32,000 nt of DNA from Wallemia ichthyophaga EXF-994 (taxonomy: Eukaryota; Fungi; Basidiomycota), in contig NW_008806290.1 in NCBI RefSeq assembly GCF_000400465.1, positions 120,001 through 152,000 of the forward strand, read 5' to 3'. Under the pieces are notes generated by a model. It saw only the letters and a program-made list of their open reading frames with translations, had not been told where the DNA came from and did no database searches. Positions 2,010 to 26,104 of the stretch are shown one piece after another; the stretch's first letter is position 1; every line of letters starts with the position of its first letter. The position numbers were made by a program, and so were the translations under genes.

Positions 2010-2367
2010 GACCGTATCAATCAACGAGGCTTTGACGGTGTCATATATCACCTCAATGATATCACCAAATGAATTATAGGTCTCTGTAGCTATCACTTCG
2101 CTTGCACAGCAATTGTGTGATTTAATCTCTTATCACCACAAGTTGCTTCATTGATACGATTACACGAATTCATTCAAAATGATTTAGTACAATTATTTGA
2201 TGATTCTATTACTTGGAATATACTCTAATTCCAGCACCCGCATCGATTTCACCCAATCACATGTGTATTACTCTTATCGTACTTTGAACCAGCGCAATGA
2301 AAAAGATCGACATTAGCAAATCATTTTGACAGATTCTTGATCTGTTAGCAAAAGACAGGCAAAATGT

Positions 2368-2371
2368 AAAA
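2368..2371 (-). terminator. Candidate Pol III terminator (T4) after the permuted tRNA trailer; further T4 tracts near 2361-2364 and 2350-2353, and T5 at 2300-2304
   Basis: Minus strand reads ...CGGTTTCC-TTTT-ACATTTTGCCTGTCTTTTG directly after the tRNA 5' half. T4 is a weak terminator in yeasts, so the real end may be at the T5. Confidence 0.45.
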
Positions 2372-2379
2372 GGAAACCG

Positions 2380-2457
2380 TACGAGTCAGGCGCTCTAACC
2401 CCTGAGCTAAAAGCGCTGGGTTGCGCCTTCGCGGATTTGAACCGCGGACCTCCTGAT
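2380..2457 (-). tRNA. tRNA-Thr(CGU): Circularly permuted tRNA-Thr(CGU): 3' half (38-73) at 2457-2422, 5-nt linker ACCCA at 2421-2417, 5' half (1-37) at 2416-2380
   Basis: The rejoined 73-nt sequence GCGCUUUUAGCUCAGGGGUUAGAGCGCCUGACUCGUA|AUCAGGAGGUCCGCGGUUCAAAUCCGCGAAGGCGCA folds into a complete cloverleaf. Acceptor GCGCUUU/AAGGCGC (7 bp, one GU), D stem GCUC/GAGC, anticodon stem CCUGA/UCAGG, loop CU-CGU-AA, T stem CGCGG/CCGCG with UUCAAAU loop. G15-C48, the Thr identity pairs G1-C72 and C2-G71, and A73 are present. Confidence 0.9.
2433..2443 (-). promoter_or_regulatory. Pol III B box (GGTTCAAATCC) in the tRNA 3' half
   Basis: Exact match to the GGTTCRANTCC consensus. Confidence 0.85.
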
Positions 2458-2478
2458 AGATCGTCGGCAAGTGCTTAA

Positions 2479-2489
2479 CCACTAGACCA
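2479..2489 (-). promoter_or_regulatory. Pol III A box (TGGTCTAGTGG) in the leader upstream of the permuted tRNA
   Basis: Matches TRGYNNANNGG and lies 35 nt before the B box, close to the spacing in an intronless tRNA gene. Confidence 0.7.
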
Positions 2490-2924
2490 CGTTTCCATAA
2501 AAACAATCTTTATCATAACAATATATTATCAGGACTTTTTCCTGTATCATAATTGCTGCTAAATTGAGCAAGATGGCTGTTTTATTACCCTTTACGAGTT
2601 CTTAAAACCGCAATTGACTACGTACCAAAGATACTCCGATGGTTCAGCGTAACTGAGAACCACCAACAATTCATAAATTGCGACGCTAGTCAAGAAACAC
2701 TTCCAGTAAATTCAGTACCCCCTTTGACTTCCTTCATGGTTTAATATTTATTGATGGACGCAGTTTTTAACATTTATCGTCTTAACAATATATTCAGATT
2801 TCATCATCAGCAAGATTGGTATGGTTCTGCAACTGTTAATTCTGCAGTAAATTTGAGAGTAGTTTTAACGTGAACAGTGTAGTGAAGTGCTCTGTACTGG
2901 TCCAGGTAGATGTGACATGCTTCA

Positions 2925-3560
2925 ATGAGTAAATCTTGGTATATAATATGGTTTCACTTCAAATCACTTCGACAAGACCTTACTGTAAGATGGATCAAGA
3001 ACGATTTCACAGTACAAGTCTACGAAATTCACGCAAGACTAGCTTTAGAGAATGGCGACTTAGGTGAATACAATCAATGCGCTGCTAATTTACAACCTCT
3101 TTATCAATTAAATCTTATGGGTAACAAATTAGAGTTTATAAGCTACCAAATTCTATACCTATGTTATAGCAGTAACTGGTCAGCGGCGAATGTACTTGTT
3201 GGACTGTTGTCAAACGAAAAGAAAGAAGCTTATGAGATAAAGCACGCTTTAAAGATACGTTCATCACTACTTACTAACAAATATCATCTCTTCTTCAGAT
3301 TAAATTAAGATTAGTTAAATATGTCTGCTTACAGTATTGATATTTTCGTTGAAAGAGAAATGTTGAAGGCATTGATAATAATAACTAAGGCTTACATAAA
3401 GATACCATTATCCTTTATAAATAATGAGCTCAAATTCGAAAATACTACGGCAGTAGAAATCTTTTAAAGCAACTCGGCGCTGTTAGCTGTTTCAAAAGGA
3501 GCGCCGTTGGTGTCACAAACAATGGCGTGCCATCAGACCATGAAAAGATGCTTCTTTGTA
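2925..3560 (+). pseudogene. SAC3/GANP/THP3 (LENG8-like) PCI-domain gene remnant with in-frame stops
   Basis: ORF has FKSLRQDLTV..IKNDFTVQVYEIHARLALENGDLGEYNQC, typical of Thp3/LENG8. The same frame continues through TAA (3306-3308) and TAG (3312-3314) into LNMSAYSIDIFVEREMLKAL...TKAY, which is also family-like, and then meets another TAA. No intact N-terminus was found. The right boundary is approximate. Confidence 0.7.
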
Positions 3561-4421
3561 TAAATTTCCATCTAATACTGGATTGCTGCTAAGTGCCTTT
3601 TACGTCTAGCGTTGTCTCAACCTTCTTCACACCCCAATTAATTGAAATGTCGAAATGCGACAGGTGAAGCCAAATTCGCGATTTCATAGTCGGGCTGAAC
3701 CCTAATTTCTTGAAATAAACTGTATTCAATAGTCGTACGAGCATTGATCCTGAATGAAATTAGTTTCCCCGGATCCAATTTTAATTCCCATGGACGCTAA
3801 GTGTCCGAAAAAGTAAATCACGTTTATAGAGCAAATTAGCTGATATGTTTAGCAGCTTGCGGTCTATAAAAGTCAAAATGGATTTTATCATCGATCAAGC
3901 TCGTGGTATCTCTTGTATCTATCCTTTAGCATGCTACAGAGCGATGTCGGATAACAACTTCCGAACAGCCTGCAAGACTCAATTGAAAGCTCCCAGGGCT
4001 TGCCCTCTAATCGATACACACACGTAGATGGTAAATCTACAAATCCAACTCGGTAAATATTGAGCGGAGGCTAACAAGGAGATAAATTTGGAATGCTGAA
4101 GATACCATAAAAATGATGGTGTCGCTATATTGTTCAAATTGACAGTATATCATATCTCTGAGTTCGTCCTCTCACTTATTTTGCCGTTTGCGAGATGCCT
4201 CGAGTAGCTTGTATACTATATAGTGTGTCTTGCTGATTTCAGACATCTGTAGCACTATTTCAAACACCCAAACACCATGCCAAGTTAAGATCTTATCGGT
4301 GCTGTGCTTCGAAGGCACAAATTGTAAGCGACCAAAGGAAGCAAATAAATATTCAAATCTGTGTTACATGATTAATTTCAAAATACAAGCATAGAACTTG
4401 GTTGGTTTCAAATAGCGAAGC

Positions 4422-7192
4422 TTATTTGCTACCCTTACCGCGTGACGCGCTAGCCTTGCCGCGTTTTGATGCAGCTGGCTTTTTTGGTTGTTTGACAAGC
4501 TTATCAGCAGTAACATCGTCATTTTCATCGTCTTCCTCTTCCTTAACATCTACAACGTTATCATCCTCATCATCCAATACGTCTTCGTGGTCCGGTACCT
4601 CAGCCTTAATTTGGGCGGCTGATGGTTTAATGACTTGACCGCGAGAAAATGCAATAGGGTGGTCTCTGTTATTGTAGCTGTTGCGAGATGGTTAACTACC
4701 AATCATCCCTTAGTGATTGACTTACTTTCTCGTGAATGCAGTTTTGTTCTTCGTGGGTATACATTTCACTGTCTTTTCAAGAGCCAAATCACCAACACCT
4801 AGCTCAGACATAACATCAAAGTCGTCCTTAGAAAGCATATAATTGTCCAGCAAGTTGATAACACTATCAATATCAGGCTAAAATGGTTAAGCGTTAGTGA
4901 CTTGGAGTGTAATTATTTGGATACGTACGACACTCTCTGTCAATGGGTTAAACATCCTTGGCCACAATGTTGGATAGTAGTACTGTCTAATTTCGTCACG
5001 ATCACCACTAACCTTGACTCTCATTTTTGCTTGAATTTCACCCAAAGCTCTGATATTCTTGTTTGTTTTCGAATATTGACCAAGCCACATTGGGAAACTG
5101 ATCGTATCTCTACCAAAGCTTTTAAATCCACCGTACATAAAGGAAGCAGGTCGGACAGTAGAGTTCATGGCATGTAAAGGCATTAAACCCCATTGTTGTT
5201 GTGAGCTATAAGCAATTTGAGCTTTGAATGAGGCTTTTAAAAAGAAAGACACACCCATGGATCATGGAATCGACCAAATCACCATCAGAAATAGCATCTG
5301 CAGCTTTACTGGCATACTTCATGCGCTTAAACTCAGCTTTCTCATTATTTGAATCTCTTGCTTTGGCAGGATTGCATTTGACGTAGTTTTCCTAATCGAT
5401 TGAGTTTTGCTTACTAGATATTGCAAGCTACTTACCTGAACGAAAAGTGGTATTAAGCTATGATCATGGAAATAATAATCAGCCTTCGATCCAAGGGTGC
5501 TAGTGCTAGTTGCACCAAACATGTGTGGACTGAAGAGATTGGACATGACAGTCCAAGGTGTTTGGATGGTAAACTTTTGATTCTGTTGAACCCTTGAAGA
5601 AAATTGTCAGCCAAAAGATAGACAGTGGAACTTCTAAACTAACAGTTCTTTGCCTTGATCAAAATTCATTGAACTAGACAGTAATTTCCATGTTGAAATC
5701 ATGTTGATGACTTGTCTGATATCTGACTGAGAACCACTCACAAGCTGATCAACAACAACAGGGTCCAATTTCATTTTTTCTCTAAAGCAAGTCAATAAAG
5801 TGGAGTGTTGAGGTATATAGAGTCGCACCTGTGAAGGATAGACATGATGCGAGATCTCACTTGAGTGGCTTCTGGTCTTCTAAAAACAATGTCACCACAT
5901 GTCGATTGAAACGGTCTCATTTTTGGATTCGCCTTGTCATTACATATGCAAATGATAGGAATCTTAATAGAGTGAGACGGATTGTTGGAAAGTAAACCAA
6001 CGTACCCTAGTCTTTCTAATAAGAGTGTTCATAGCACCAACACCTCCTCTGTCTCCTGAAGACATACCGTCGCACTCATCAAAAATCAAGCAAGTGGAGT
6101 GATTGAGAGGATGAGTCTCAGACTAATTAGAGTGTTAGGAATTGTACGAAGAGACCTAGCGTAGACGAACGTTGCTACCAAAAAAGCTATCAATAGAAGT
6201 ATTGTCGATGTTGGTGGTGTTTTCAATCAGCTTCTTACTTCTGACGTCACTGGCGTTTAGTTCAAGAGGTGAGAAGCCAGCGATCTTGGCTGCTAAATGA
6301 GCTGCAGTAGTCTTTCCTATTCCAGGAGCGCCATGAACAAGAAGCGCTCTCTTGGATTTGATATCATTCTTTGAATTGTCAGAGGGAAAACCCGCCTGTA
6401 ATTGATGTTGCCTGGATGATTTTAAAGGAGTGATGAAATTAACGGGAGACATACCAATTTTGCAACCAATTCAAAATCTTTTCTACTTGACCTTTGTTAC
6501 CGCAGATATCTTTGAGCTGAGTGGGGGCGTATTTGACAGTCCAAAGTTGAGAGTTTGGTGAGGTAGATTCAAAGGATGAGCTGGGAGATTGGATAAGAAA
6601 GATGATGGAAAGAAAAGACTATAACGCACGCTTTTGAAGAGCGTTTATCTTTAGCTTTCTGTTCTTTCTCGATGGCTTCCATCTCTTCAGCGTCTTTCTT
6701 AACCTTAGCTTCATCTTTCTTTACTTTGTTGAGATAAGAAGGGTCTTGCGAAGGAGAAGTAGTCGCAATCAAGTTACAGAAGCCGTCTTCATCGAGAGTT
6801 TTAAGGCCTTTATCTTGTATAGTCTGTAGCTTCTTTGGGCCAGGCTCTCTGCCCAAAATGACATACGAAGTTTTACCGGAAGGTGCGGCAGTGACCTTAG
6901 CGCCATAACGCTTAGCCGCCTCAACAGCAGAATCACGGCCGACGTTATCTAGTTCACCGGTGAAGACGAGAGTAAGGCCACTCAAGCAACCAGGAGCGCC
7001 CTCTGGGATAGATTTAGAGCCAAGACTTTCAGGCCCAGGGCGTTGGAGGTAATCTTTGTAAGAGAAGGAGGAGGCAGGCGCGGAAGACGAAGCAGAAGAC
7101 TTGGATTTCTTTTGAGGAGAATTCTTCTGCTTAGGAGGAGGAACGTCTTCATCGCTATCAGAGATAACGACCGTCTTGCGTTTCGGGGCCAT
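4422..7192 (-). CDS. RFC1: Replication factor C large subunit (multi-exon)
   Basis: BRCT domain (GLTLVFTGEL...AKRYGAKVT..PSGKTSYVILG), Walker A GAPGIGKT, LELNASDVRSK, DECDGMS..DRGG, IPIICICND, QSDIRQVIN and the RFC1 C-terminal FPMWLGQYS. Stop at 4422-4424. Confidence 0.95.
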
Positions 7193-7232
7193 TATCGTGG
7201 AGGTGAGAGATAAAAGTAAATAAATTACATGA

Positions 7233-8173
7233 TTACAACTTTCTAATTTGATTTTTGTTCAAATTAAAGCCAGCCAGTAAGCCGCCTAAATTGCCTTGAT
7301 TGAACAAACCCTTAGCGCCAGCGACGTGTTGAATGAATCTGTAGATGTGTTAATGGATGCGTGCGACTGATTACATACCAACCTGTCGTTACCAGAGATG
7401 ATAAAGTTGAAATCCTTCAAATCAAACTTATTGTTATTATCAAAGTAGCTCCACCAACTGCCACCCAAGCCTAGAGATTGTTTCAATTTATACATATCTA
7501 AATGTCCTTCTTTTGAAGAATTGATAAAATTCAAATGCAAGTTACCAAACTTCCTACTCATATCCAGCAAATCAGATTTAAAATACGTAGATTCTTCATT
7601 CGTTGAGCTGTAGATAAGGTGGATTTGTTTGTTTGAGTTTGTCGACAGCAATGAATTTATAGATTGCATTGCAGGTGTGATAGCTGTACCACCAACTATG
7701 AATACTAAGTTATTCCTATCAAACATATTCAAATCGAATGATAAATTTGGGCCTCTAAGCTCAATTTCATCATTTGGTTTTAAGTTGTTTATATAGTTTC
7801 CAATCTCTGAGTTCTTGTAAAGCTTCACTAGTAACTCAATCTCTCTTGTGTCTTTTGTAATAGGTTTAAGGGGCGTGTATGGTCTCTCTGTTTGGATAAA
7901 CGGCTGCTTGACCCAGATGTGGTGTATAATTGATAAAAAGTCATTCGGAAATTTATCACTTGGGATGGCAACTTTCAGCAATTTTGCATCCTCAGTGATT
8001 TTATCGACTTTATTCAATTTAAACTTTGAATATTGATAAGGATCTAAGTTTTCCTTCAAACTTGTATCATATTTTGGCATTGGTATTGTTAAATAGAGCG
8101 TTAGACTGACAGTTGATAGCCCTAGTACTCCCATCGATATTCCTCCTACGCGTCTCATAGTACTCCTGCTCAT
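7233..8173 (-). CDS. Mitochondrial NADH-cytochrome b5 reductase-like flavoprotein (Cyc2/Mcr1 type)
   Basis: N-terminal membrane anchor, RPYTP FAD motif and GGTAITP NAD motif. One late intron joins SGND-R-FIQHVAGAK...QGNLGGLL. The start (8173) is the likely Met, not proven. Confidence 0.85.
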
Positions 8174-8199
8174 CGTATCAAACAGAGAATAATTTTCAT

Positions 8200-9204
8200 T
8201 CATTGAACCGGTTTACGTAGCCAAATTATATAATTACACCAGTTGGTCGCTGGTATTGACGGATCCATTAGATTCCAACGGTTTGAAATTGGATTATACG
8301 TCATTCCGTTTATTTCACCTTTTAGTCTATTTAATATTGGCGTTGAATCTACTAAAGATATCAATGATTGGTCGTCTATTGTAACATCGTTCGGTTTCAA
8401 CCAGCCAACTTGATCTCTGAAAAACTCAACCATCTCTATTGGTTTGATATACTTGTTATAATTATGTGTACCTTTGGATACCAAGCCTAAAACATCCTCA
8501 GCCATTGTAATCGTTAAAAGCTTTGATAAAGGTGTACGCGATATCGTTGATATGAACATATGTCCACCGGGCTAAGCTTTATCGTTAAATAAGGGTTTAT
8601 ATAACACCATATCACCCACTTTAACCAAATCTGTGCACGTCTTTAAGAAATCCGCTGCTTTGTCCACATGCTCAATGACTTCCATCGCACAAACTAAGTC
8701 AAATGACTCTTTTCGCGTCTTCAACAGCTCTTCCGCTGCTGAATATTTGTACTCCAAATTGCTCTGATTGAAGTATGGGTCCTGCTTCGAATGCAACTCA
8801 GCCATTTTGATATTAGCTTCGGTGACATCAATTCCAGTAGTGGTAGCACCCAATCTAGCCAATGTCTGATAACGGTGTTAGAAAATAAAGCAAGCTAAGC
8901 GTTAATATTCAACCTCTGATAGTAAACCGCCGCCGCAACCAATATCTAACGCTGTCAACCCACTTAGAGTATTTACATCTTTAAACTGCCTATTACTTCG
9001 TATTGCGTCTTCCCTTCTAGCGTTGTTGATATTCTTCAGTATAAATTCAGCTCTAACTGGGTTCATCTTATGAAGCAATCCAAACTCTCCAGATTCATCC
9101 CACCAATGCTTGGAAAGCTTTGAGAAGAAATCAACTTCATGCTTATTTACTGTTGAGTACAGCCTGGAGTTATTTGTGATCCTCCTGATTGATCCACTCA
9201 ACAT
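8200..9204 (-). CDS. COQ3: Ubiquinone biosynthesis O-methyltransferase
   Basis: Mitochondrial presequence, EVDFFSKLSKHWWDESGEFGLLHKMNPVR, SAM motif ALDIGCGGGLLSE, FDLVCAMEVIEHV and PGGHMFISTISRT. Two short introns. Confidence 0.95.
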
Positions 9205-9277
9205 GATCCTCAACGTCGTCTCACAACCGTATAAATAGCGTAATTTACATTTATTATACAAACAAATTAATATCTGA

Positions 9278-10893
9278 TTATACTTCATCTTGGTCTGCAT
9301 GGTACTCTGTATAATCAGGTCTCTCCGATGCCTGATACTCATCAATCATATCCTGAACCACCTCCCTCGAATCATGGAACTCATCCATGTTATTTGAGAA
9401 CATCTTTTCACGCTTATATGGCTCCAAGAATGCGTTCCTCTTCATTAGTCTATCATACTGATCTCTTACACGCTTAAAGAGTGATGCAATCGATGTATGA
9501 TTAGCCAGCATCAACCCATTAACCCTATGTGAAGAAGGCACGTAAGGCGATTTACGCGTTAAAGCTACTTGGATTGATGCAGGACCCCAAGGAATAAAGT
9601 TTGCTAATTGTCTCTCCCTTATTCTTAACAAAGACTTGTGAACATCAGTTGGATCAACATCACCTTGGATTATATTCAACAATGAAATATAACAGCTATT
9701 TTTTGATGTTGGTGCACTAACCATTCTGTTTTTTGGTTGTAAAAGTCTTCTCATGACGTCCAAAACTGTTGTCTTCCTGATTGACTTGGCTTTTTCAATT
9801 TGATCTGAAGTGAAAGGTGTATAAGATGTCATTAAGAAATGACACCGTGGAGTTGGTATAAGAGATGCAATAATTGATGATAAGTCGTTGTTCATGTAAC
9901 CCGGATATCTCAGTGGTGTTGTTGCCGCTGACATGACAGTTGATACCTTTTTCTTTGTTAGAGTGTCTTAATACATGAAACAGCAACCTCACCAATTGAT
10001 TGGTTTGCGAGAATGACGGATGTGGCACGTGTAATCTATCCGCTGCAATTCTAGACAGAGCAGCGTTATCCAGAACAACAACACTATCCGCGTGATTGAC
10101 CAATCTTTTCAAAGCGAGCATGCTATTGTAAGGTTGAACAACAACATCCGAGGTTTCCTGATTATTTGGAAAAACAGAGTACGTCTGAATAAGCTTTTTC
10201 GGGAACCTATCATTCAATCTTTCAAGCAGAAAGGAACCTAAACCAGAACCGGTACCACCTGCAATAGAATGCAAAAGCATGAAGCCCTATTTAGCATAAA
10301 GTGAGCTAATTTCAATCATCATCACCTTAACTAACCTCCAACGAATCTGAACCGTCAGCCTCTCTATCAATCATATCAAAAACTTCATCATAAATACGCT
10401 CAGCTGCGTGATAACCCATAGCCCAGTTATTTGCAGCACCACCACCATCTTGTGAGACGTAGATGTTTTCTGGGTTGTATAAGTTTGCAAATGGGGACGA
10501 TAGTATGTTGTTGACGACCTAATAGCGTGACAAAGTGAGAAGTTTGTAGAAAATATAGAAAGAAACGCACCCTAGGCTCTAAATCGACTAGAATAGATCT
10601 TGGAATGTAATGATCATCGTCTGCTTGATAGAAGAAGACGTCTTTTCTATCAAAACCCGCATCCTGAGCGTGGTCTTCTAGTGTACCATCCTGGGATATA
10701 CCATGCTCGTGACAAAGCTGTTGCCAGAATGAGTGACCAACTGATAGCGATCCGTGTTAGAGTCTATAAACGCGTGTCTAGCACTGACTAACTCGCGTTT
10801 CCCGCTTGACCAGCTTGTAGGGTACTATAGAAGCGTGTCAAAAAGCATAATAGACGCTATTTAGACGGAAATTCACATTAATTCTCTTCCCAT
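9278..10893 (-). CDS. TUB4: Gamma-tubulin
   Basis: Spliced N-terminus [18 protein letters not shown]...[68 protein letters not shown]. Confidence 0.95.
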
Positions 10894-11134
10894 AGAGTGA
10901 TTGAGTGATTGTACTGAACAAGATGAAAATGGAAATGTCAAGTTCAAATCTGTGTATGTGCTTTGGATATGTGTATATTTTAAGTATTCAATATACACAG
11001 CTATATCCACTCACAAATCCCCCAACTCCGCGTTGCCAGCGTCGAATCCACGTAAAAAGTTGCAAAAATTAAAATTTAATTATACAACAATATAAGCAAA
11101 TAAAAATAGACAACTGATGAATTCAACTTTATTT

Positions 11135-11144
11135 AAATTTTTCA
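11135..11144 (-). promoter_or_regulatory. RRPE-like element (TGAAAAATTT) upstream of NOP1
   Basis: AAATTTTTCA on the plus strand, 125 nt before the fibrillarin ATG. RRPE is the known ribosome-biogenesis promoter motif in yeasts. The context is AT-rich, so a chance match is possible. Confidence 0.4.
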
Positions 11145-11269
11145 TAAAACATTTCACCATGTGACAGATTTTCCCGCCTTCTCTCTTCTGAGTGCACATT
11201 GAAGGCAAAGTCTTTTATCAGTCGCATAACCCAGATCTCTCCCTTTAAACTCATTCATATCTCTTAATC

Positions 11270-12339
11270 ATGGCTTTCGGTGGTGGTTAGTCTCCAGTCT
11301 TCTCTATCACCCTTCTAAATTTTATCTCAGATCGTGGTGGTCGCGGTGGCGCAAGAGGCGGTCGTGGCGGTGCAAGAGGTGGATTCGGTGGTCGCGGTGG
11401 TGGCAGAGGTGAGCTGAATCGCATTTCAATTCCTCCTCTCTAATTTTATCCAGGTGGTGCTACCCGCGGTGGTGGTGTTCAAGGCAGAGGCGGTAGAGGC
11501 GGTGCTCCACGTGGTCGTTAGTCTAGTTCTACGCTTGAAATACTCACTCTAACTCGTTTCCAGGCGGTGCTCCAAGAGGCGCTCCAAGAGGTGGCAGAGG
11601 TGGTAAACCTGGCCCAGGTGGAAAGAAGGGCGGTAACGTCATCCTTGAACCACACAGACATAAGGGTATCTTTATCGCTAAAGGAAAGGAACACTTGCTT
11701 GTCACAAAGAACTTGGTCCCTGGTGAAGCCGTTTACGGTGAGAAGAGAATCGCCGTTGAAGGCGACGACGGCACAAAGGTTGAATACAGAGTCTGGAATC
11801 CTTTCCGCTCCAAGTTGGCTGCTGGTGTTTTGGGTGGTTTGGACAACATCCACATTCAGCCTGGCTCAAAGGTCCTCTACCTCGGTGCTGCTTCAGGTAC
11901 TTCTGTTTCTCACGTTGCAGACGTCGTCGGTCCAGAGGGCTGTGTCTACGCTGTCGAGTTCTCCCACAGATCCGGAAGAGATTTGGTCAACATGTGTAAG
12001 AAGCGTACAAACGTCATCCCAATCGTCGAAGATGCTCGTCACCCAATGAAGTACCGTATGTTGTTAGGAACTGTTGATGCCATCTTTGCCGATGTTGCTC
12101 AACCTGATCAATCTAGAATTGTTGCCCTCAACGCTCATCACTTCCTCAAAAACGAAGGCCACGCTGTCATCTCCATCAAGGCTTCATGTATTGATTCTAC
12201 CGCTCCTGCTGAGGCCGTTTTCGCCCAAGAAGTACGCAAATTGCAACAGGAATCTTTCAAGCCAAGAGAACAACTTTCATTGGAACCTTACGAGCGTGAT
12301 CACGCTGTGGTCGTTGCCCGCTACGAGCGTCACAAGTAA
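11270..12339 (+). CDS. NOP1: Fibrillarin, box C/D snoRNP rRNA 2'-O-methyltransferase
   Basis: RGG/GAR N-terminus split by short introns, followed by [54 protein letters not shown] and LEPYERDH. Confidence 0.97.
11331..11635 (+). repeat. Low-complexity Gly/Arg (GGT/CGT/AGA) coding repeats of the fibrillarin GAR domain
   Basis: Repeated ggtggtcgcggt / ggcagaggt units within NOP1 exons. Confidence 0.8.
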
Positions 12340-12454
12340 ACGTGAAAGCGTGAAAACGTGATTCAAAGTTTAGACTCAAGATTACTAGCAGAATAAATTT
12401 ATTATCTTCTCTCTCCTTTTGTACTTTATCACATACTACGAAAAAAAAAACTAT

Positions 12455-13313
12455 CTATTTGTGGCGTGAAAGATAAGTTAAAGTCAGCGAAGATCCTATT
12501 ACCATTCCCATTAAGACTGGTGCGAAAGACTTGAATACAGAGGCTGCTTTGCTTAATGTCAATGAATGTGCCTTGGGTATCTGATCCTTGTCGTATCCCT
12601 CCAATATGTGCTCAAGGTCTTTGTCAGACATTTCTGCGAGCTCATCAAAGCTGTAATTGTCGCAGACTTTGATCATCCATTTCATCCGCTTAACGCCAGG
12701 CTTACCGCCAACTGTTGGCTCAATTGCTCGAAGTTTTTTTCTCAAACTACCTACGTTGGTTATCGCAGGTCCAATAGTCTTTGGCAGTGCATTCTCAACG
12801 ATACCCTTTAGTTTGGCTGATATTCTAGGTCCCTGACCACCGGTAGATATCAATATCTGCAGTGGACCTCTTCTGACTATAGAACCGAAGTAGAAGTCGC
12901 AATTTGGTGGTATGTCAGCCACATTTGTAGCGATATTGAGCGACTTTGATATATTATATATGTGCTTCGAAGTTTCTACATCGTCGATAGCTGTCAACAC
13001 CATATTTGCATCCTTGAAATCATTCGCGTCTTCAAACTGTCTATCGACGTAATCAAATATTTGACCAGAATCAACTCGATAAGCGACTTCTTGGTTTAAT
13101 CCATTCCTTGGGCAAATTAATCTGATTTCTAGATTGTAATTTCAATAAAAATATATGCATTCCCGCTATTCACTCACTCGCGTCTGCATTTAAGAGATTG
13201 ACGATACGACCAGCAGCAACTTCACCACCACCGATCAAAACGACAATCTTTTCCTTCAGCTGCCATGCAATCAACAAGCCACCGCCTGGTTGAATTTCTG
13301 GATACGTTGACAT
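12455..13313 (-). CDS. MET8: Siroheme synthase (precorrin-2 dehydrogenase/ferrochelatase)
   Basis: GGGLLIAWQLKEKIVVLIGGGEVAAGR Rossmann motif, NVADIPPNCDFYFGS and ISTGGQGPRIS. One intron near 13133-13178. Confidence 0.92.
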
Positions 13314-13389
13314 GAGTGATTACGTCTGAGAGCAGCTTTCAATCAAGTAAAATGAATCAAATGCTGAAAATATAATATATATTTGCTAT

Positions 13390-16300
13390 TTACATTGTAC
13401 GCCAGCCACCCTGATCACTAACAAGATCCAACTTGCGTCCAATCCACGATGGAATCTGGTGATTAACCCATATTCTGTATATCTCATTTAATCTTCGCTT
13501 ATGCAGGTATTGTGGTTTTCCACGACTACTTATATGAGCTTTATAGTGCGAGGAAATCAACTCAACTCACCGAATACCAATATCTACTTCACCGTGCGCA
13601 TCCAGATATGGTGGTTGCGCAAACGATCCCTTATTATCGTATAGGTAGAACGTTGCTGACTTCTTTGGCATGAAATATGCTCCGACTACACCGCCACATC
13701 TGATATATGTCCGTTTAGTCAACGCAATCAAATCAAATCAACTTACTTCTTCATGTGTGTGTTGCATTCACCAACCTTGGTCGACTGGTCATGACAACAG
13801 AACGACTGATGACAAAGTGATGCCCCACAAAGCAAACATAGCGCAGGATCTGATGGTACTTGGTTGCAGTTTGGACATACTCTCGTGAGAACATCATCAA
13901 TCAAAGCTGATAATTGATAAGGCAATGCTGTCAGTCTGTATATTTGTGGATAATCCAGCTTCAAAGTATAGTCTCTCGGTCTCAGCTCTTGTACATGATG
14001 TCCGAAATGTGAACACCATCCTTCAACCATTCTCTGTATTGTCGTTTGTCTCGATGAAGATGTATTCAATGCTTCGTTTGGCGGTAATATCTCTAGCTCT
14101 TTCATTAGTCGCATAAACTCGCAGTCGCTCTCTTCTTCATTCATTCCGTGCATCTTAACATCACTTTCATTACTCTTCTTGGTGAAAAGGACTGGAGCCT
14201 TCCTTACTACCCTATTCAAAATTGAAACCCTCCTTAAGAATGGTAGCATGTAGCTATACATGAGCTTGGATATATACTCATCTGGGAGTAACTTTAACAT
14301 TCTCTCCCCATCGTTGTATAAAGCAGTGAATGATTGCAACATATAATGAATCACCGATGAAATGTTCCCGAATATATGCTCTGCATTGGCAGGTAACCTT
14401 TCTATCTCTGCTGGTGGTCTTAATAACGGCGAGTCTGCAACACCATCTGTTCTAGATGCTTGGATGAGTGCAATAACTGTTCTGACTAATTGAGCATAGA
14501 AAGTAAGCGTTATCATAGGTGGTAATGACTCTGGTGCTGTTGCTGCTGTCTCTACTAGCAAGCTGAATGGATCGCGCAGCAACAAAGGCTGACGAACATT
14601 ATCTTCTCTACCAAACTCTGGTAAAATACGCTGGAAAATACCCTTGGCTATTATTTGCGGACCATTTGATTGATGTACCGGATGACGAGTTGCTAAATTT
14701 TCCAAACAACCTAACATACTTTCAATCATCAACAAATGTAATTCATTCACTTGATCGGAAACAGATCTTTCATTGCCTCCTGTACCACGGAGTGCCACTT
14801 CAATTGATGATATCGTGTATGCGACAAGTTCACCTGGTAGATACATTCCTTCACTCGATAACTCCTGTGCTGCTGGAATACTGCTTTGTCTCATATCCTC
14901 TGCATTCATTGAAATAGGTTTAATTAAACCCATTAATCTATCTGTAAGTGCAGATTGTGGATTCTTTTCGATGTTATCCAGCTTTGAAGGAGCAGATCTA
15001 GCATACCAAGGCCAAAATTCACCAGAACCAGTCTCTTGTTCTTGGAAGTCATTCAAAAGCGATACTTTTGGATCTTTGAGTAGATCAATCGATACAGATC
15101 TAACCCATTCTGTAATCTTAGGGCTGCTTGAGACTGCTTTTGGGCGTTTAAAGATTGGCATGATAGCATTACCTAATCCTTTGCATAACGGACATATAAA
15201 CTCCTTCCACTTAGGCTCGTCCGGCTGTGTTCTAGCGATTTGAGACTGATGGCGTGACACACTCGACGCGAAGTAAGTCTCGAAACACGATAAGTGCATT
15301 CTGTGTCCGCATGTTGACATGTGTAAGCCCAATCTGGTGTGCTCTGATGAGAATCCTGGAGTTGTTGTGTTTGGTTGAGTTGAACGGCTGTTTAGTTTGC
15401 TCTGAATAAAGCTTTGCTTGTACTGATTGTCAACACTTGCAGGTGATGACTCAGGACGTTTATCGAGATCGTGCGACATCCAAAGTGGTTCATAAACAAA
15501 ATTAGGATCGAGTGATGGAGTGTTTCTAAGTAGCTTTGATGGTTGAACGAAAGCAAGTGATCCGAACGACGTCCCACCCAAAACTTCCTGACAGACTATG
15601 CAGTCGCCAAAGTCTCTGTGATCTGCATGCGGATCATCACTACCCAAATTATCCTCTACTGCATCGTCTTCATCTTCCATATCTTCATCCTCATCACCCA
15701 ACTGATCCAGCAAGTTTTTCTGCTGATTAGCGAACTTCTCCATAATGGCTGTTTGTCTTGCTTTGGCAGCAGTCTTGCGAGCTTCAGCAGGATCTTCAAT
15801 TGGCTCGTTACTAGCTGGTTGGATGATTTCTCTGCTCGCACTAACAGCATCTCCACAAACATCACTCAATTGATCCAAAATCCAACTAATCCTTCCTTTG
15901 ACATTTACCAGTCTTTGGTCATTCTCGTGCTTACACAGCAACTCTACGAGCGTTGAATGCATAAGATATCTTCTTGAACCAGCGAGCTTTGCAAAGATGG
16001 TCTTGGCTTCGACCAAAGCACACATAATAAGATGCAGTGCTGCTTCAATTAGTATATCACGAGTGAATGATGCAGCTGGTCTGCCCTGCTCATCTCTCTC
16101 GTTGAAGGCGTTAAACAATGACGCGTATACAATTTGTTGGAATACCTCTGTCTTGTATACACCAATGAAGGAATTATACGGTCCATTCGTAGGCACATCG
16201 AGCTTCTTGGGAATGTGTATTGCATTCTCTTTTCCGATGCGCTTATAAAACTTCTGCAATGACGTCGCAGCTGCTTCGCGCATGTTCCTCGTAAAGTTCA

Positions 16301-19011
16301 TATAGTATGGGTCAACATGTTCAAAGTATTCGTCTCGCAGCTCGTATGTTCCATAATCAGAAGTACCATCGGGTGATCTAAACTTGGCAACTTTGTTGAG
16401 TATCCTATCGAACGCAGGATCGTCTACCAAAGTATCTGATATTAATCTAGTAAATTCAGAATATGTTGATGGACCAAAACAGAGTGCGTGTATCAGTGAT
16501 CTTTCGATGCGCTTCTCCTTTGACCATCCACCAATGTTCGTTGGCTCTGTCAGACAGGCGATCAGCAATAGAATAAACTCTTCAGCCATTGCTGGTGTTT
16601 GCTTTTCGTCATACACTGAGTGATAAACATAACCTTCAAACCAAGTGAGCATGTCGAATTTCGTCAGCAGTGACACCAATGCTTGCTCGGCATCGACGAT
16701 AGTGAACATAATTTGAACGTTGAAGAGATCCAAGTCGTAGGTGTTGTCTCTGAACGTGATTTCTCGGTAGTGGTGTACTTGACCACGTACAGAAAAGCCA
16801 TTGCGAACCCACAATCCACAACGAGCTTGAGCAACAAATGCACAAACTAAAAAAACCGTCAGCAGATTCTAAGGTGATTTTCATCAACTTACCTCTCATT
16901 GGCTGCTCAAAGAAGGCAACTGCAGGTAAGAGATTGTTCCTGGCACGTTCGCCGAATATGAGAGGCAGCTCGCGTGTATTGACACCTTCGGGATAAAAGT
17001 GACCTAGAATTTGAACATGCTTCAGAAGATTTCCGAGCCACCAGTGTAGTGGATGATGGAAACTAACTGATTCATAGGCGACACTATAGTCAATTACGTC
17101 ATACGCATGTCCACCAAATTGTATACCAGCTTCTTTGGTTGAGAATGTTGGTCTGTGCATAGTTTTAGCAATACCATCCAAAATGTGCTTGATCAGTGTT
17201 ACCAGTTGAATAGGAGTGAAGTTGGACGACAGGTCACCGAGCGCGTTAGTCACTTTGGTCAATTGTATAGTGCAATTAAAGGCATTAATCCAAGCGTCAG
17301 ATTCGTATTCAACATGCTCATGAACGGCTCTTTGGAACTGGTTCATATCTGTGAAGGGAATGAAGAATTGAATAAAGTCGTCCAACAAGTCCATCCTTTT
17401 TGGCAGCTCATCAACAACGGCTTCATTAGTTAAAAGCGTCTTGAGGTCATGGATAATATTCAGGTATCGCTTGTGTCTGATTGAAGTAGATTCGCAGTCG
17501 ATGATATCATTGCTTATTTTGTCAACTAGTTTAATCTGTTTAGGTGAAGTTCTCTGCTCTGTCAAGAAGGCATAAATAAGATGCAGGATTGTCGTTAGTA
17601 GTGAGTTGGCGTGAAATTCTGAATTGAAACATATCAACGATGCAACAGATGGTGTTGTAAAAACTTGAATGGAGAACAATAAAGCGGAGAGCTCTGGTTC
17701 GTGATCTTGTAATAAGTAGCTTTCAACCAGGTTCTTGTAGACCAAAGCAAACTGCAAGCCTGAGTCTCGTTAGTAAACAGCTCCTGCAAAGGTGATGAAC
17801 GCACCAACACGACAACGAACGTCTTGGTTTACACCCAACAAAGCGACAAGCATATCCCTGAACAATTTACGTGCTCTCTTCCACATTCTGGACTCCAATA
17901 AGAATAAGCACTGTAAATTAGTCATCTGACGCTTGTCTTTGGTGATTTTATCAATGTGGGTTGATGTAGAAACCTTGAGCAGCTCTTCTGCTACAATCAA
18001 TCTCAACTCTTGAGGTCTTGAGTGGCAGAGATCGAATAGAAATTCGAGAAGAAGATGACAAATATCTTCAAGATAAGTGTCGTGAGATGGCCTGATCGTG
18101 ACAGCGAGATCGATGGAGTTGATAATAACAGCAACTTTCAATAGAGCGTTGATATCGCTGGATGACTTAAGTACTTCTCTACCCTAAAAAAAAGTTAGTT
18201 AAGAAAAAGGTGAGAAAATGCAACGTGCGTGTTGATCGACGTGCTCTGCAGCTGTTCTAGATGTAGAGTGAGAGCAGTCAATAGCCAGGGAAACTTGCTC
18301 AATAACTTCATCGAAAGAGTGGCGTTCATCGTTCCACAAGACGACAGACCAAGGGCCAGGCTCAGATTGAGATTCAGGTTTAAGTGTAGGGAGTGACTTG
18401 ACCTGAGGAATGTTGGTAGGGGGGGTGAATTCGGTCGGGGAATGAGCAATAGTGTCAATAATGAATTTAATGATTGTAGAAACGTAGAGACGTGCTCTTT
18501 GGAGGGATTCTTCGGGAAGGTGAACATTCACATTGTCTGGTTCATCCAAGTGCGCGGGTCTTCCTGGATCGATTCTCCAAGCTTCAGGATCGCCACAATC
18601 GCAACAACCACCAGCTGTCATAAGGCTGAAGCTGATCTGGTGATTACTGAAAGGGTGATCGGGGGAATCTTGAGGGTGAGTAGCGTGAAAGCAGCGTGAA
18701 CAAAACACAGTTGTTGGATCTATAGCGCAGTCTTTGCACCTGTAAACGACGTCACCCTTCTTAAAAACATAACCACATGGTTCAAATTGAGATCTGCCTC
18801 TTCTCCCCCCGAGGAACTTATTCTGCAGCTCATTGAATCTTTCATTAGCGCCAATATCGAGATGATCGCCGGTAACGCCAAAGAAATCAGGCGCAAAAGG
18901 GCCAATGAAGGATTTGTAGAGGGAGTCCTTTGTATTTGATTGGTTAAAATTAAAAATAGAATCTCTTTGAGGGTTTTCCAGTAAGCATCCAAGGACTTGT
19001 TCAAAGCTCAT
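13390..19011 (-). CDS. UBR1: N-end rule E3 ubiquitin ligase
   Basis: UBR box (CGYVFKKGDVVYRCKDC...GGCCDCGDPEAW), ClpS-like domain (VVLWNDERHSFDEV), LWVRNG, RING-H2 (CIVCQE...CGHRMHLSC...EFICPLCKGLGN) and C-terminal CPNC...CLLCG, PPYLDAHGEVD. Several short introns. Confidence 0.95.
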
Positions 19012-19032
19012 CAACGTTAACCAACAACGGTG

Positions 19033-20915
19033 ATGGCAGATGTAAAACTCTATGATGTGGATCGATATCAATTTAATTCGATAGATTTCCACGCATCTAT
19101 AACACAGCATTTAGCATTAACTGATAAGCAGCACTTGCTGGATATCAGAGATGCCGGTACGGAGGATGGCTATATGAGGGAATTCGATGGGGACCATATG
19201 TACATATTTAACCTATTAATCAAGGTTATGAGATTCGTCAAGGATTCCTTCAATAGACCAATTTTTGAACAATTCGAATTCATCCCAGATCAAGCCCAGG
19301 ATCCCTATTTCCACTCTATAGTCACAGATCCTTTCTCCTTATCTCAATTAGAGAAGAATGTTAACTCCGGCTTCTACATTACCACCAGAGCCTTTGAATC
19401 AGATTTATTCCGCGCTTTCGACGCTTTCAGATTAGGTAGCCCTATCGGTAGTCTCCGGTACGGCAACGTAAACATTCTCCAGCGTTTTTATGTCGGCCTT
19501 TTTGCCCCTTCTCATTTAACACTTCCTCAAGAATTCAATTTCGCCTCTGCAAAAGCTGGTCCTGGTAACCCTTTCGCTGAAGAACTAGCTGAAGGTCAAC
19601 CTGGAATGGAAGGTGTTGGTCCAGCTACTTCTAGAATCCTAACAAGGCATAGGTATTTTAAAGACGATGCTCAATTCAGAGATTTACACTTGAATATGGG
19701 TGATTGGGTGCATATCATCAACCCAGACGACGCAACAAAGCCTATACCAGCTCAGCTGTTCAAGGTCTTCACTCCTGATTACTCCTCCCATATACACATA
19801 ACTGTTTGCAGATATTACAGGCCTGAGCAGACTGTTCATGCTCCTTATAGGACTTTCTACGAAGACGAGGTATTCAAGTCGGGTAATTACGTTGATTTAC
19901 CAATTGAAGATCTTCTCGAGAAGACTTTTGTTATGTTTGCTACTAAGTATTCCAGGGGCAGACCAAAGGAGCACTTATGGGACAAGCGCAGACCACTTTA
20001 CGTCGTCGAGCACAGGTATTCACCAAAGTCAAAAACAGAAACAGGTGGTTTCTCAAAGATTAAATCGTGGAACGCATGCATACCTGAAGAAGTACGAAAA
20101 ACAGAGTATGAAATGGACTCATACGATGACCAACAAAAACCAGCGTCTTTGATGTCACCCTTTATGCGAGGTATTGAAGGACCAGGTAGAATTGACGAAA
20201 ATGCACCACCTCCTCAAGAAGTTGGCCCTGTTGCTGTTAGTAATGCGGCCATTGTTGCTGAGCAAGTTAAATTGATGCCTGAAGGTGCAATGGTCTCGGC
20301 AAGTCAAGCAGGGCAAGGCTCAATGTTACTGAAGAAGCAACAAAAGGACTATATGCTTCAGCAAACGACTCAAGCTAGTAAAAAAATACAAGGTGAACTC
20401 AAGAAGACCACCCCAATATACGATAAGCCATCAGTAAAGCGCGACAGAAAGGGTAAAGAGTTGAAAGAGCTCGACAGATCGATACAGAGTATGTGCAAGA
20501 AGAGAAACTTGGGTGATCATGGTGAAGTCACTACTATCCCCGAAGAGACTGGTAGGTAGTTTACTCTGTTGATGGTGTGCTCTAACCAAACGAAGCTGCA
20601 TTCTTTGAAAGAGACGCTGAAACTAACAAGCTCAAGTGGTTTTCTGGTATGCCTATGATATTACCAAAGAGAGGACAAACTGCATACTCGGCGGAGTACC
20701 TTCTCCATAGACTCGAAGGCGAGCCGCAAACGAAGAAAAGCAAGACATTGCCTTCTATCTCTGAAGAGTCTCTGCATGCTTTCGATGACTTTTGTCGGAA
20801 TACGTTTGAGACGCAAAAAGAAAGTCGAGCTGAAACCAATACAACAGCACTAAACGCAAGTGAACCACTTCTGTATTTGTCTGAGAGCATATCAAAGACG
20901 ACTAACTTATTGTAA
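19033..20915 (+). CDS. RSC1/RSC2-like chromatin remodelling subunit (degenerate bromodomain plus BAH domain)
   Basis: Bromodomain-like segment (KDSFNRPIFEQFEFIPD...FESDLFRAF), BAH (GDWVHIINPDDATKPIPAQ...CRYYRPEQTVH...FYEDEVFKSG...KIKSWNACIPEEVR). Intron 20552-20595 joins to AFFERDAETNKLKWFSGMP. The start codon is uncertain. Confidence 0.85.
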
Positions 20916-20951
20916 AGTATCATATAAATTGTCTTTCTTAAAAACTGTCAA

Positions 20952-21946
20952 ATGATTGATAAGATTCTTATATGCAGACACGGAGTAAGGAGTTGAGCAC
21001 ACAGGGATTCATCTAACAAGCAATAAACAAGTTTAGAGCCAATTGGGTTGACAGTAGCTGGTTGGTTGGGGTTGAAGGAGAAGATATATGCTGACGCAAC
21101 AAAGGCCAGCGGAAGACAGAGATACTCCACTGGCTGCGTATGGCGTGGTGAGAATGAGAAAACTAGCGCTACTAGACGTAAAAAGCTCACCGGCGCAACC
21201 AGGATCAAGCAAATCAGCTTGCGGAGCATCTGCGATCGTCATACAACGCGTCATCGATTTACAGTTCGCCGTTCCACAGGTGCCTGCAAACCTCTCAACC
21301 GACTTCGCAGGCGTTTAGCCTCCCAATTCGAGTAGAGCCGGGTGTAAGTGGACAAATAGAAATTGATTGAGCAATGTTCTTATGGCGTGATCAGATACAG
21401 GAATGGTTTCACGAGAATCCACCAAACAAAGCACCTACATTGCATCCTCAGCCGGTGTACACGGATCTCAAGGCTAAATTTGGCGAGATTGACACCCAAT
21501 ACAAGCCCACTTTCTATCCAAATCGTCATGGAGAATCTCTAGAACAACTCCACGAGCGATGCAAGATTGCACTAGCAAATCTCATCAGGAGGGAGGAAAG
21601 AAGGGGAGTTTCTGGTACTATTCTTCTCTTTACACACGCCGCTAGCGCTATTGCACTTGGCAGAGGTCTGCTCAATGACCCAGATAGAAATATTAGAGCA
21701 GGTTGTGCTTCCTACTCTGAGGTAAGCGTACTGCACACGCTCATCCAATGTTAATTTTTGTTTCAGTATGTCCGCCGAGGGGACGCTTGGGAGATTACAA
21801 AGAATGGCAATAGTGACCATCTCATTCAAGGAGAAGAGCGCCATTGGGACTTTTCACTCTCTACTCGTGAATATGAGGATGGTTTGCAAGGTACTGAAAA
21901 TCTTGATCAGGGAGAGTGGGGACTTGTTCCAGAAGCTCGTCTGTAA
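20952..21946 (+). CDS. Histidine phosphatase / phosphoglycerate mutase-like protein (related to the tau55/Tfc7 N-terminal domain family)
   Basis: Spliced MIDKILICRHG-FRANW, DTPLAAYG, SSPFHRCLQT, EPG-IQEWF, ESLEQLHERC, LFTHAASAIALGRGL. Five short introns. Confidence 0.85.
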
Positions 21947-24496: not shown

Positions 24497-24705
24497 GTAT
24501 AAATGTAATAATTGTGAATATCAAAATAATTTTATAAAATTTGATTTTGGTAGAAGTTTTGAGCGGGCTTCTTCATTTCTTGCCTTGCTCACGCACGATT
24601 CTGTTGGAAGCAGTGAAATCCATTGCAAGTTTACAAAGTCAATTACAAACTTGTAGATCGTTCTCCACAACACTCGTATTCCACTCAGCAAAGAAGAGAA
24701 CAAAG

Positions 24706-26104
24706 ATGCCACCAAAGAAGAACCAGCAACCAGAGCAAAAGATTAGACTTGGAAGACCGGGCAACAACCTCAAAATGGGTATTGTTGGTCTCCCAAACGT
24801 CGGAAAGTCATCTCTTTTTAACATCATGACTTCTTGCGATCTTGGCAAAGCTGCCAACTTTCCTTACGCTACCATTGAACCAGAAGAGTCAAAGGTTATC
24901 GTTCCTGATGAGCGTTTCGATTGGTTAGCTGACCACTACAAGCCTGCATCAAGAGTCCCAGCTTTCTTGTCTGTCATTGATATTGCCGGTCTCACTGCTG
25001 GTGCTTCCACTGGTGCCGGTCTTGGTAACGCCTTCTTGTCTCACGTCAGAGCAGTTGACGGTATTTTCCAAGTCGTTAGATGTTTCGACGACGCAGATGT
25101 CATCCACGTTGAAGGTGATGTCGATCCTATCCGTGATATGGAGATTATCCAATATGAATTGCGTTTGAAGGATCAAGAATGGTTGGAGAAGGCCGTCGAC
25201 TACCAAAAGCGTACCGCAAGATCCGCCAACCACACCACGCTCTCTGGTAAAGCTGAGCACGACAAGCTCCAAACTATCATTAAAGCTCTTGAAACTGTCG
25301 CAGGTAACGAAGAAAGTGGTGTTGAAGGTATGGACATCCGTAAGCAAATTTGGTCTGCTAAGGAGGTGAGTTTTACTCTTGCGTCGCCAGCTTTTGCAGC
25401 CTATTATGATGATAAAGAGCATTGCTCGAAACCCAGCTCGTCGAAAAGACAGGAGTAACGCCCATGTCTATGAGATAACGTTTATTCTGATTCTTTTTGC
25501 TCAACCTGGCACGCCCTTATTTTAAAACAAACTAACACATATTCAGGTTGACGTTATTAACGGTTTGAACTTGCTCACTGCTAAGCCAATCATTCGTCTT
25601 GTCAACCTTTCAAAGCGTGACTATTGCCGCAAGAAGAACAAGTGGCTCGGAAAGGTCAAACAATGGGTCGATGAGAAAAACCCTGGTGATTTAATTATCC
25701 CATTCTCAGTTGCACTTGAGGAAGAGCTCATGCAACTCTCAGATCAAGACAAAGAAAAGGAACTTAAGAGCTTGGAAGAAGAGTACAAGTTGCCTGTCAC
25801 TCAATGTCTCGGAAAGATTACAACAGCAGGATACCAATCTTTGGAACTTATCAGATACTTTACTTGTGGTGAAAAGGAAGTTAGAGCATGGACAATCGCT
25901 TCTGGTACCAAAGCACCACAAGCTGCAGGTCTCATTCACTCTGATTTCGAAAAGAACTTTATCTGTGGTGATATCATGACCTACGATGACATAAAAGAGC
26001 ACAAGACCGAGAACGCCGTGAAAGGTGCTGGTAAGATGAGGCAACAGGGTAAGCCTTATGTGATGAAGGATGGTGATATAGTCTACTGGAAGTCTAACGC
26101 TTAG
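24706..26104 (+). CDS. OLA1: Obg-like ATPase OLA1/YchF
   Basis: [76 protein letters not shown]. One intron 25366-25546 (GTGAGT...ACTAAC...CAG) joining WSAKE-VDVING. Confidence 0.97.
25402..25494 (+). ncRNA. Intronic box C/D snoRNA, snR69-like (predicted guide for LSU rRNA Cm2948, yeast numbering)
   Basis: Box C ATGATGA (25406-25412), guide AAACCCAGCTC (25429-25439) complementary to the conserved LSU GAGCUGGGUUU, D' TCGA (25441-25444), internal stem AGACAGG/CCATGTCT, C' ATGAGA (25470-25475) and box D CTGA (25487-25490). It sits in an intron about four times the local size. Confidence 0.8.

Follow-up and report, generated by a model that had tools for sequence, protein, structure and literature searches.

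A probable circularly permuted tRNA-Thr(CGU) gene in the nuclear genome of the fungus Wallemia ichthyophaga

Can a transfer RNA (tRNA) gene whose two halves lie in the wrong order serve a fungus? The question is raised by a short locus in a 32,000-nt stretch of the genome of Wallemia ichthyophaga EXF-994 (contig NW_008806290.1; hereafter the window, to whose positions all coordinates refer), in which the 3′ half of a tRNA-Thr(CGU) precedes its 5′ half. W. ichthyophaga is a haploid, obligately halophilic basidiomycete with a compact genome of 9.6 Mb, of which 1.67% consists of repeats (PMC3849046). A first-pass annotation had read the locus as a circularly permuted tRNA gene in a fungal nuclear genome, and the setting proved to be as described: the window lies on a 249-kb nuclear scaffold of W. 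ichthyophaga, and positions 2340-2560 are 100% identical to the EXF-994 record KE007240.1 (GCA_000400465.1). Two of the window's proteins, moreover, share 90%-identity clusters with annotated W. ichthyophaga proteins, those of EXF-994 included. The evidence presented here, which is that of sequence, supports the circularly permuted interpretation, and we consider it likely that the locus is a functional nuclear tRNA-Thr(CGU) gene with its junction at tRNA positions 37/38.

Swapped halves and the cloverleaf they form

All features of the tRNA unit lie on the minus strand. The 3′ half (tRNA positions 38-73; ATCAGGAGGTCCGCGGTTCAAATCCGCGAAGGCGCA, 36 nt) occupies 2457-2422 and is followed by the intervening sequence, or linker, ACCCA (2421-2417), which forms the loop closing the acceptor stem and is predicted to be removed by RNase P and a 3′ processing activity. 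The 5′ half (positions 1-37; GCGCTTTTAGCTCAGGGGTTAGAGCGCCTGACTCGTA, 37 nt) then occupies 2416-2380, with the anticodon CGT at 2383-2381. Both the coordinates and the sequence of this arrangement agree with the first-pass annotation. Once the 5′ half and the 3′ half have been rejoined, ARAGORN identifies the resulting 73-mer as tRNA-Thr(cgt) with a standard cloverleaf, comprising an acceptor stem of 7 bp, a D stem of 4 bp, and anticodon and T stems of 5 bp each. The claimed pairing across the halves, 7/7 in the acceptor stem and 5/5 in the anticodon stem, was reproduced in this model, with the addition that one acceptor pair, T5-G68, is a wobble pair that had gone unmentioned. The universal residues are likewise visible in the sequence: U8, A14, G18G19, U33, TTCAAAT and the G15/C48 pair. 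Swapped halves, a short linker and a canonical rejoined cloverleaf are the features that structurally define a circularly permuted tRNA gene, and all are present here.

The locus had been expected to escape standard scanners, and it did so: in native order ARAGORN finds no tRNA across the 32-kb window, and at the gathering threshold Rfam reports no tRNA there, its sole report being a small nucleolar RNA (snoRNA) elsewhere. A permuted-aware search was approximated by running intron-aware ARAGORN on circularised 170-nt windows. It covered ~100 kb (the window plus related loci), and the locus was the only permuted tRNA that it returned; the permuted pattern is thus not a frequent chance product. 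For two unrelated halves, the chance that 12 of 12 inter-half stem pairs would form is ~0.375^12, or roughly 1e-5 by our own arithmetic.

The locus was also compared with other known gene architectures. A split tRNA gene of the Nanoarchaeum type was ruled out because the halves are 5 nt apart and share one promoter-like region and one terminator. A dimeric tRNA gene was ruled out because no complete tRNA is called by ARAGORN in native order, whether or not introns are allowed; the leader that precedes the 3′ half is, moreover, unable to pair with the acceptor or anticodon strands of that half. A tRNA-derived short interspersed element would be multicopy and dispersed, with a head related to a tRNA; a single copy occurs in the ~100 kb of Wallemia sequence, in a genome with the low repeat content given above. 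Classification as a tRNA pseudogene or fragment was also rejected, as the stems and universal residues are intact and the halves are invariant amid hypervariable surroundings.

Assemblies, polymorphism and conservation

The EXF-994 assembly was built from short reads with SOAPdenovo at K=21 (PMC3849046), so an artefact had to be considered. Specifically, the K=21 reference could have been joined wrongly at a repeated tRNA sequence, and reference-guided assembly could have spread the error to other strains, since the EXF-994 reference served as the guide for them; consistent with such an origin, contigs in four Logan assemblies (k=31) break within the 5′ half. The same arrangement is nevertheless present in ten of ten NCBI W. 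ichthyophaga assemblies read (L011-L020), and the unit contains strain-specific single-nucleotide polymorphisms (SNPs) in several combinations: A/G at linker base 1, G/A at leader position –8, C/A at trailer position +1, and G/T and A/T at two pseudo D-loop sites. The junctions must therefore be covered by reads from each strain itself, and SNPs in leader, linker and trailer make an assembly artefact unlikely. In addition, the other strains were assembled with IDBA-Hybrid at k up to 120 from 150-nt reads (PMC6738226), which exceeds the 78-nt core of linker and halves. Finally, the four Logan assemblies, three of them W. ichthyophaga-like (L002, L003 and L010) and one from another Wallemia species (L004), are independent; in each the 5′ half joins the trailer directly and then the neighbouring gene, with no 3′ half downstream. 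We regard an assembly artefact, which the first-pass annotation had named as one finding that would undo the locus, as very improbable.

Variation among the ten strains was examined across the 2.4 kb that separate two annotated genes, RFC1 and the choline-transporter-like gene, an interval with 39 variable columns. None of the 73 tRNA positions varies, compared to 10/108 elsewhere in the unit (promoter region, leader, linker, trailer and terminator) and 29/2231 in the remaining interval. The halves are depleted in polymorphism relative to the rest of the unit (0/73 vs 10/108, Fisher p=0.005, with a local comparison window picked post hoc, after inspection of the data), but set against the whole 2.4-kb interval 0/73 is not significant alone (p=0.30). 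The non-tRNA part of the unit is 7.7x more polymorphic than the remaining 2231 nt (p=6e-6), and the unit lies within the most polymorphic 181-nt window of the interval. Transcribed tRNA genes have mutation-rich flanks around a constrained mature sequence, a pattern attributed to transcription-associated mutagenesis combined with strong purifying selection (PMC6130373). Invariant halves within hypervariable flanks match this published picture of a tRNA gene that is actively transcribed and kept under purifying selection, and the variation among strains thus suggests a gene in use.

Constraint is also apparent between species. In L004 the neighbouring protein is 75% identical and its coding DNA ~82% identical, and within the intergenic region alignment is limited to tRNA positions 10-37 and AGGTTCCTTTTT (trailer and T-run) and reaches 95% over 40 nt, with positions 10-37 themselves identical. 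Maintenance by selection is therefore indicated within the species by the depletion of polymorphism in the halves, and across species for the 5′ half and trailer. The conservation in relatives that the first-pass annotation had proposed to check is accordingly seen in part: the 5′ half and trailer are kept in another Wallemia species, and the full arrangement is seen in W. ichthyophaga only.

Further searches returned no other instance. Among more distant homologues of the neighbouring gene (L005-L009), the upstream sequence is either too short or AT-rich without a tRNA, and at the Wallemia hederae fibrillarin locus (L021) the region is absent, being rearranged next to RFC1. In the JGI metagenomes, a 21-mer from the 5′ half gave 0 matches, and a junction pattern gave 10 matches, each due either to tandem tRNA-Lys(CTT) genes of bacteria or to chance. 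A spurious 53-aa open reading frame (ORF) across the permuted gene (2348-2506, minus strand), used as a protein query, revealed no other permuted loci, and neither of the flanking ORFs has an exact-sequence record.

Promoter elements, junction structure and a predicted pathway

How might such a gene be transcribed? The leader (GGAAACGTGGTCTAGTGGTTAAGCACTTGCCGACGATCT, 39 nt; 2496-2458) is predicted to be removed at the 3′ splice site before A38, and a TATA-like element (TAATATAT; 2528-2521), putatively part of the promoter, lies ~25-30 nt upstream of it and of the predicted transcript start; two columns of this element (alignment columns 34-35) are polymorphic among strains. The T arm carries a B box (GGTTCAAATCC; 2443-2433), the sole match to GGTTCRANTCC in the window with at most one mismatch. 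Within the leader, a D-arm-like sequence, GTGGTCTAGTGGTTAAG, includes an A-box-like element (TGGTCTAGTGG; 2489-2479) with 10/11 matches to TRGCNNAGTGG, which starts 46 nt upstream of the B-box start, a normal A-to-B spacing. A-box matches with at most one mismatch occur at the chance rate (~8.5 per 64 kb); the probability of finding one on the right strand and 30-60 nt upstream of the B box is ~0.004. A weak alignment of 2489-2430 to positions 8-63 of the Rfam tRNA model (15.6 bits) takes in the pseudo 5′ module together with the true T arm. A decayed 5′ module in the leader may restore the normal order of A and B boxes, an idea that is only moderately supported because three strains carry AGTTG rather than AGTGG, a G>T substitution that affects a conserved A-box G. 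Derivation of the leader from a copy of the threonine 5′ half was considered and set aside, the similarity being non-significant (p=0.33).

Downstream of the 5′ half, the trailer (CGGTTTCC; 2379-2372) has C or A at +1 depending on the strain, and L004 has AGGTTCC. It is followed by two T4 runs (2371-2368 and 2364-2361), which are candidate RNA polymerase III terminators; the corresponding runs are T4 and T8 in the W. ichthyophaga-like Logan strains and T5 in L004. The unit thus possesses both an upstream promoter element and a downstream T-stretch, as consensus matches only. Separately, a weak Rfam match to the bacterial Y RNA-like family YrlA (2385-2454, minus strand) reaches 22 bits against a gathering score of 69 and was rejected as a family assignment; the aligned model positions comprise a T-arm-like hairpin, a closing hairpin and a D-arm-like hairpin, which is the module order of this locus.

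A promoter so arranged could also belong to a functional locus that does not decode, either a TFIIIC/RNA polymerase III element with an effect on chromatin or neighbouring genes, or a source of tRNA-like RNA or tRNA halves. The B box and A-box-like element are laid out as in a normal tRNA promoter, and the unit shares its strand with the choline-transporter-like gene, 360 bp upstream of which it lies. Signals resembling those of a spliceosomal intron also bracket the unit on the minus strand, a good 5′ splice site GTACGT (2625-2620) and a branch point and acceptor CTAAC..AG (2348-2342); by these signals, the tRNA unit might sit inside an unusually long (~280 nt) intron in the 5′ untranslated region of that downstream gene. 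Furthermore, the polymorphism pattern speaks to transcription and constraint rather than to decoding as such. However, constraint for protein binding would cover ~11 nt instead of the full 73, and 12/12 inter-half pairs, an intact anticodon loop and the threonine identity positions are unneeded for such a role. A non-decoding function appears quite unlikely on this balance.

To evaluate the splice junction, RNA folds were computed for four haplotypes with the cloverleaf imposed and the rest free, and also without constraint. An outer helix recurs in four of four haplotypes in both the constrained and the unconstrained minimum-energy folds; it consists of six Watson-Crick pairs between GGAAAC at the start of the leader (2496-2491) and GUUUCC in the trailer (2377-2372), and it spans exactly from the predicted start to the terminator. 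In the constrained folds of all four haplotypes, a second, 4-bp helix pairs leader ACGA (2464-2461) with U33-C34-G35-U36 of the anticodon region. Both helices are invariant in the ten strains. The predicted 3′ splice site falls in a 4-nt loop (UCU plus A38) and the predicted 5′ splice site in one of 3 nt (A37 and two nucleotides of the trailer), a layout that, in these models, resembles a relaxed bulge-helix-bulge (BHB) motif. The strict hBHBh′ motif does not fit in the canonical register, the register being shifted by one.

For the permuted gene, these elements suggest a pathway in which every enzymatic step is drawn by analogy with that of algae (PMC3978253). RNA polymerase III would produce a single ~130-nt transcript, running from ~2496-2500 to the T-runs at 2371-2361 and probably directed by the B box of the T arm, the A-box-like pseudo D-arm of the leader and the TATA-like element near –30. 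The transcript would fold to form the tRNA body, with a 6-nt loop (A73 plus ACCCA) closing the acceptor stem; pairing of ACGA with U33-U36 and of GGAAAC with GUUUCC would leave both splice sites unpaired. The tRNA splicing endonuclease, placed by the mature domain together with the structure at the junction, would then cut off leader and trailer, the fungal tRNA ligase would seal A37 to A38, and RNase P and a 3′ end-processing activity would take out ACCCA before the addition of CCA. Two orders of events can be envisaged: (i) splicing first, yielding a 78-nt circle as in algae, or (ii) end processing first, yielding a nicked two-piece tRNA held together by its acceptor and anticodon stems and subsequently ligated. 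In budding yeast, end processing normally precedes splicing, which is cytoplasmic (PMC3978253). The product would answer a need, as ACG accounts for 17% of threonine codons in the long ORFs of the window, and a reader of this codon is required. In Saccharomyces cerevisiae, the one tT(CGU) gene is essential.

Several observations weigh against a functional permuted gene, in addition to the post hoc comparison, the non-significant contrast with the whole interval and the AGTTG variants noted above. At the junction, leader –3 (C/U) is no pairing partner for position 32, the loop that contains the 3′ splice site has 4 nt instead of 3, and the variation at leader –8 and trailer +1 in the ten strains shows no covariation. 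The T-runs in the window are just T4. Nine of the ten assemblies are reference-guided and hence not fully independent (PMC6738226), and the full order of 3′ half, linker and 5′ half is seen in one species, the L004 contig beginning inside the 5′ half. The contig ends bear on a further point. Three Logan contigs (L002, L003 and L010) start at tRNA position 8 (window 2409) and L004 at position 10, and for k=31 assemblies such starts imply a branch in the graph right after A37, or two bases later. The ends may reflect a second locus sharing positions 8-37 (the 30-mer TAGCTCAGGGGTTAGAGCGCCTGACTCGTA), such as a conventional gene with an intron or another permuted copy; alternatively, they may reflect mixed strains differing at the polymorphic trailer. 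The Logan contigs are unbranched through the 30-mer from position 9 to the base after A37, which argues against an intron-less conventional copy of identical sequence in those samples.

A hinted second locus, together with a junction motif that is relaxed and the p=0.30 for the whole interval, would suit a non-functional relic, in which a tandem or dimeric tRNA-Thr pair lost its outer halves, the inner halves and spacer persist as a matter of chance and tRNA-Thr(CGU) comes from a conventional gene. Tandem duplication is indeed the accepted route to permuted genes, so that such an intermediate must occur at some point (PMC3978253). Chance survival is difficult to reconcile, however, with stems free of mismatches and universal residues that are all intact, or with halves that remain invariant within 108 nt of surroundings 7.7x more polymorphic than background. 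Moreover, the 5′ half and trailer form the only conserved intergenic island in a species ~82% identical in neighbouring coding sequence, the genome is compact and repeat-poor, and the ends of leader and trailer form a 6-bp helix set exactly between predicted start and terminator. We therefore regard a relic as unlikely, and a functional permuted gene remains our preferred explanation.

Known permuted genes, genomic surroundings and significance

By 2014, the number of described permuted tRNA genes stood at 34, spread over six unicellular algae (a nucleomorph among them) and one archaeon. A 37/38 junction is characteristic of green algae and the nucleomorph, and the intervening sequence can measure anything from 1 to 74 nt (PMC3978253). 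A 2026 review still lists only algae and archaea, and no fungal case was found in the literature searched, in keeping with the first-pass annotation, which knew of none. The closest counterparts are the Type II (37/38) genes of the prasinophytes Ostreococcus and Micromonas and of the Bigelowiella natans nucleomorph (Maruyama et al. 2010, PMC3978253). As in Wallemia, their 3′ half lies upstream on the same strand, the split falls at the canonical intron position, the acceptor stem is closed by a short intervening sequence, and the unit has an AT-rich element upstream and a T-run downstream; their leader and trailer also pair around the junction (PMC3978253), as is predicted in Wallemia. Wallemia differs in being a basidiomycete, an opisthokont without algal ancestry, and in the tRNA species, Thr(CGU). 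Its predicted junction motif is relaxed rather than a strict BHB, and its gene is known from sequence alone. In addition, its leader bears an A-box-like pseudo D-arm, whereas the algal genes are thought to be without TFIIIC-type internal promoters (PMC3978253). An inverted order of A and B boxes should not suit TFIIIC, and algae seem to use upstream TATA-like elements instead (PMC3978253).

In Cyanidioschyzon merolae (described in 2007 and 2013), the gene logic is the same and so are the enzymes proposed (splicing endonuclease, ligase, RNase P, tRNase Z and CCA addition); the circular intermediate was demonstrated in that alga (PMC3978253). That alga possesses many permuted genes with various junctions and extra introns, compared to the single locus with a canonical junction position seen in Wallemia; it also has no recognisable A/B-box-binding subunits of TFIIIC and relies on an upstream TATA element (PMC3978253). 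The archaeon Thermofilum pendens (Chan, Cozen and Lowe 2011) shares swapped halves and an intervening sequence that can be as short as 1 nt (PMC3978253). Unlike Wallemia, it has a junction at 59/60, a strict BHB for the archaeal endonuclease and a gene-encoded CCA.

Yeast dimeric tRNA genes (such as tRNA-Arg/tRNA-Asp and tRNA-Ser/tRNA-Met) place complete tRNA modules a few nt apart in one RNA polymerase III unit that uses the promoter of the upstream module. They contain two complete modules, whereas neither module is complete in Wallemia and only the inner halves match each other; a yeast-type dimeric gene is nonetheless plausible as the ancestral state. An independent origin of the Wallemia arrangement is likewise plausible from its taxonomic distribution.

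The surroundings of the locus offered several further observations. ORFs with similarity to SAC3/GANP (THP3/LENG8-like) occur at 2925-3467 on the plus strand and within a wider stretch at ~2500-4400 (Pfam PF03399, E=6.5e-5, below the curated cut-off; homologues 57-59% identical). No gene is annotated in this 2.4-kb stretch in any of the ten NCBI W. ichthyophaga assemblies, and it is probably a missed gene. The W. hederae sequence (L021, GCA_004918325.1, 1-2851) is collinear with window 4476-21945; past RFC1 it continues into a dynactin gene, which in W. ichthyophaga lies ~22 kb away and inverted (window 26515-28588). This order places a rearrangement breakpoint between RFC1 and the region of the THP3-like ORFs and the tRNA. 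The snoRNA reported by Rfam is of the C/D-box type (25402-25494, plus strand; Afu_304, 46.7 bits, above the gathering score); as it lies between two large ORFs (24541-25458 and 25565-26104) of an OLA1/YchF-like GTPase gene, it is probably intron-encoded.

The locus has the structure that defines a permuted tRNA gene, and what may be new is the host lineage, the tRNA species and the A-box-like module borne by the leader, a possible promoter variant. A more ambitious account would make it the first permuted tRNA gene in fungi or opisthokonts, of independent origin, and the working, perhaps only, source of tRNA-Thr(CGU) in the genus, with a decayed 5′ tRNA module retained in the leader as a surrogate A box for TFIIIC, which would overcome the inverted order of the boxes, and a Trl1-type ligase joining positions 37 and 38; taken as a whole, we offer this combination tentatively, leaning somewhat against all of its parts holding together. 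Permuted tRNA genes have so far passed for a curiosity of a handful of unicellular algae and the nucleomorphs descended from them, plus one archaeon. A fungal case, if true, would indicate that the arrangement can arise and persist alongside standard TFIIIC-dependent RNA polymerase III and yeast-type splicing enzymes. As W. ichthyophaga is culturable and haploid, has a small genome and is related to tractable yeasts, both the promoter question and the order of processing would be directly testable there. Routine annotation of fungal tRNAs can miss a real gene of this kind, and isoacceptors that appear to be missing merit a permuted-aware search.

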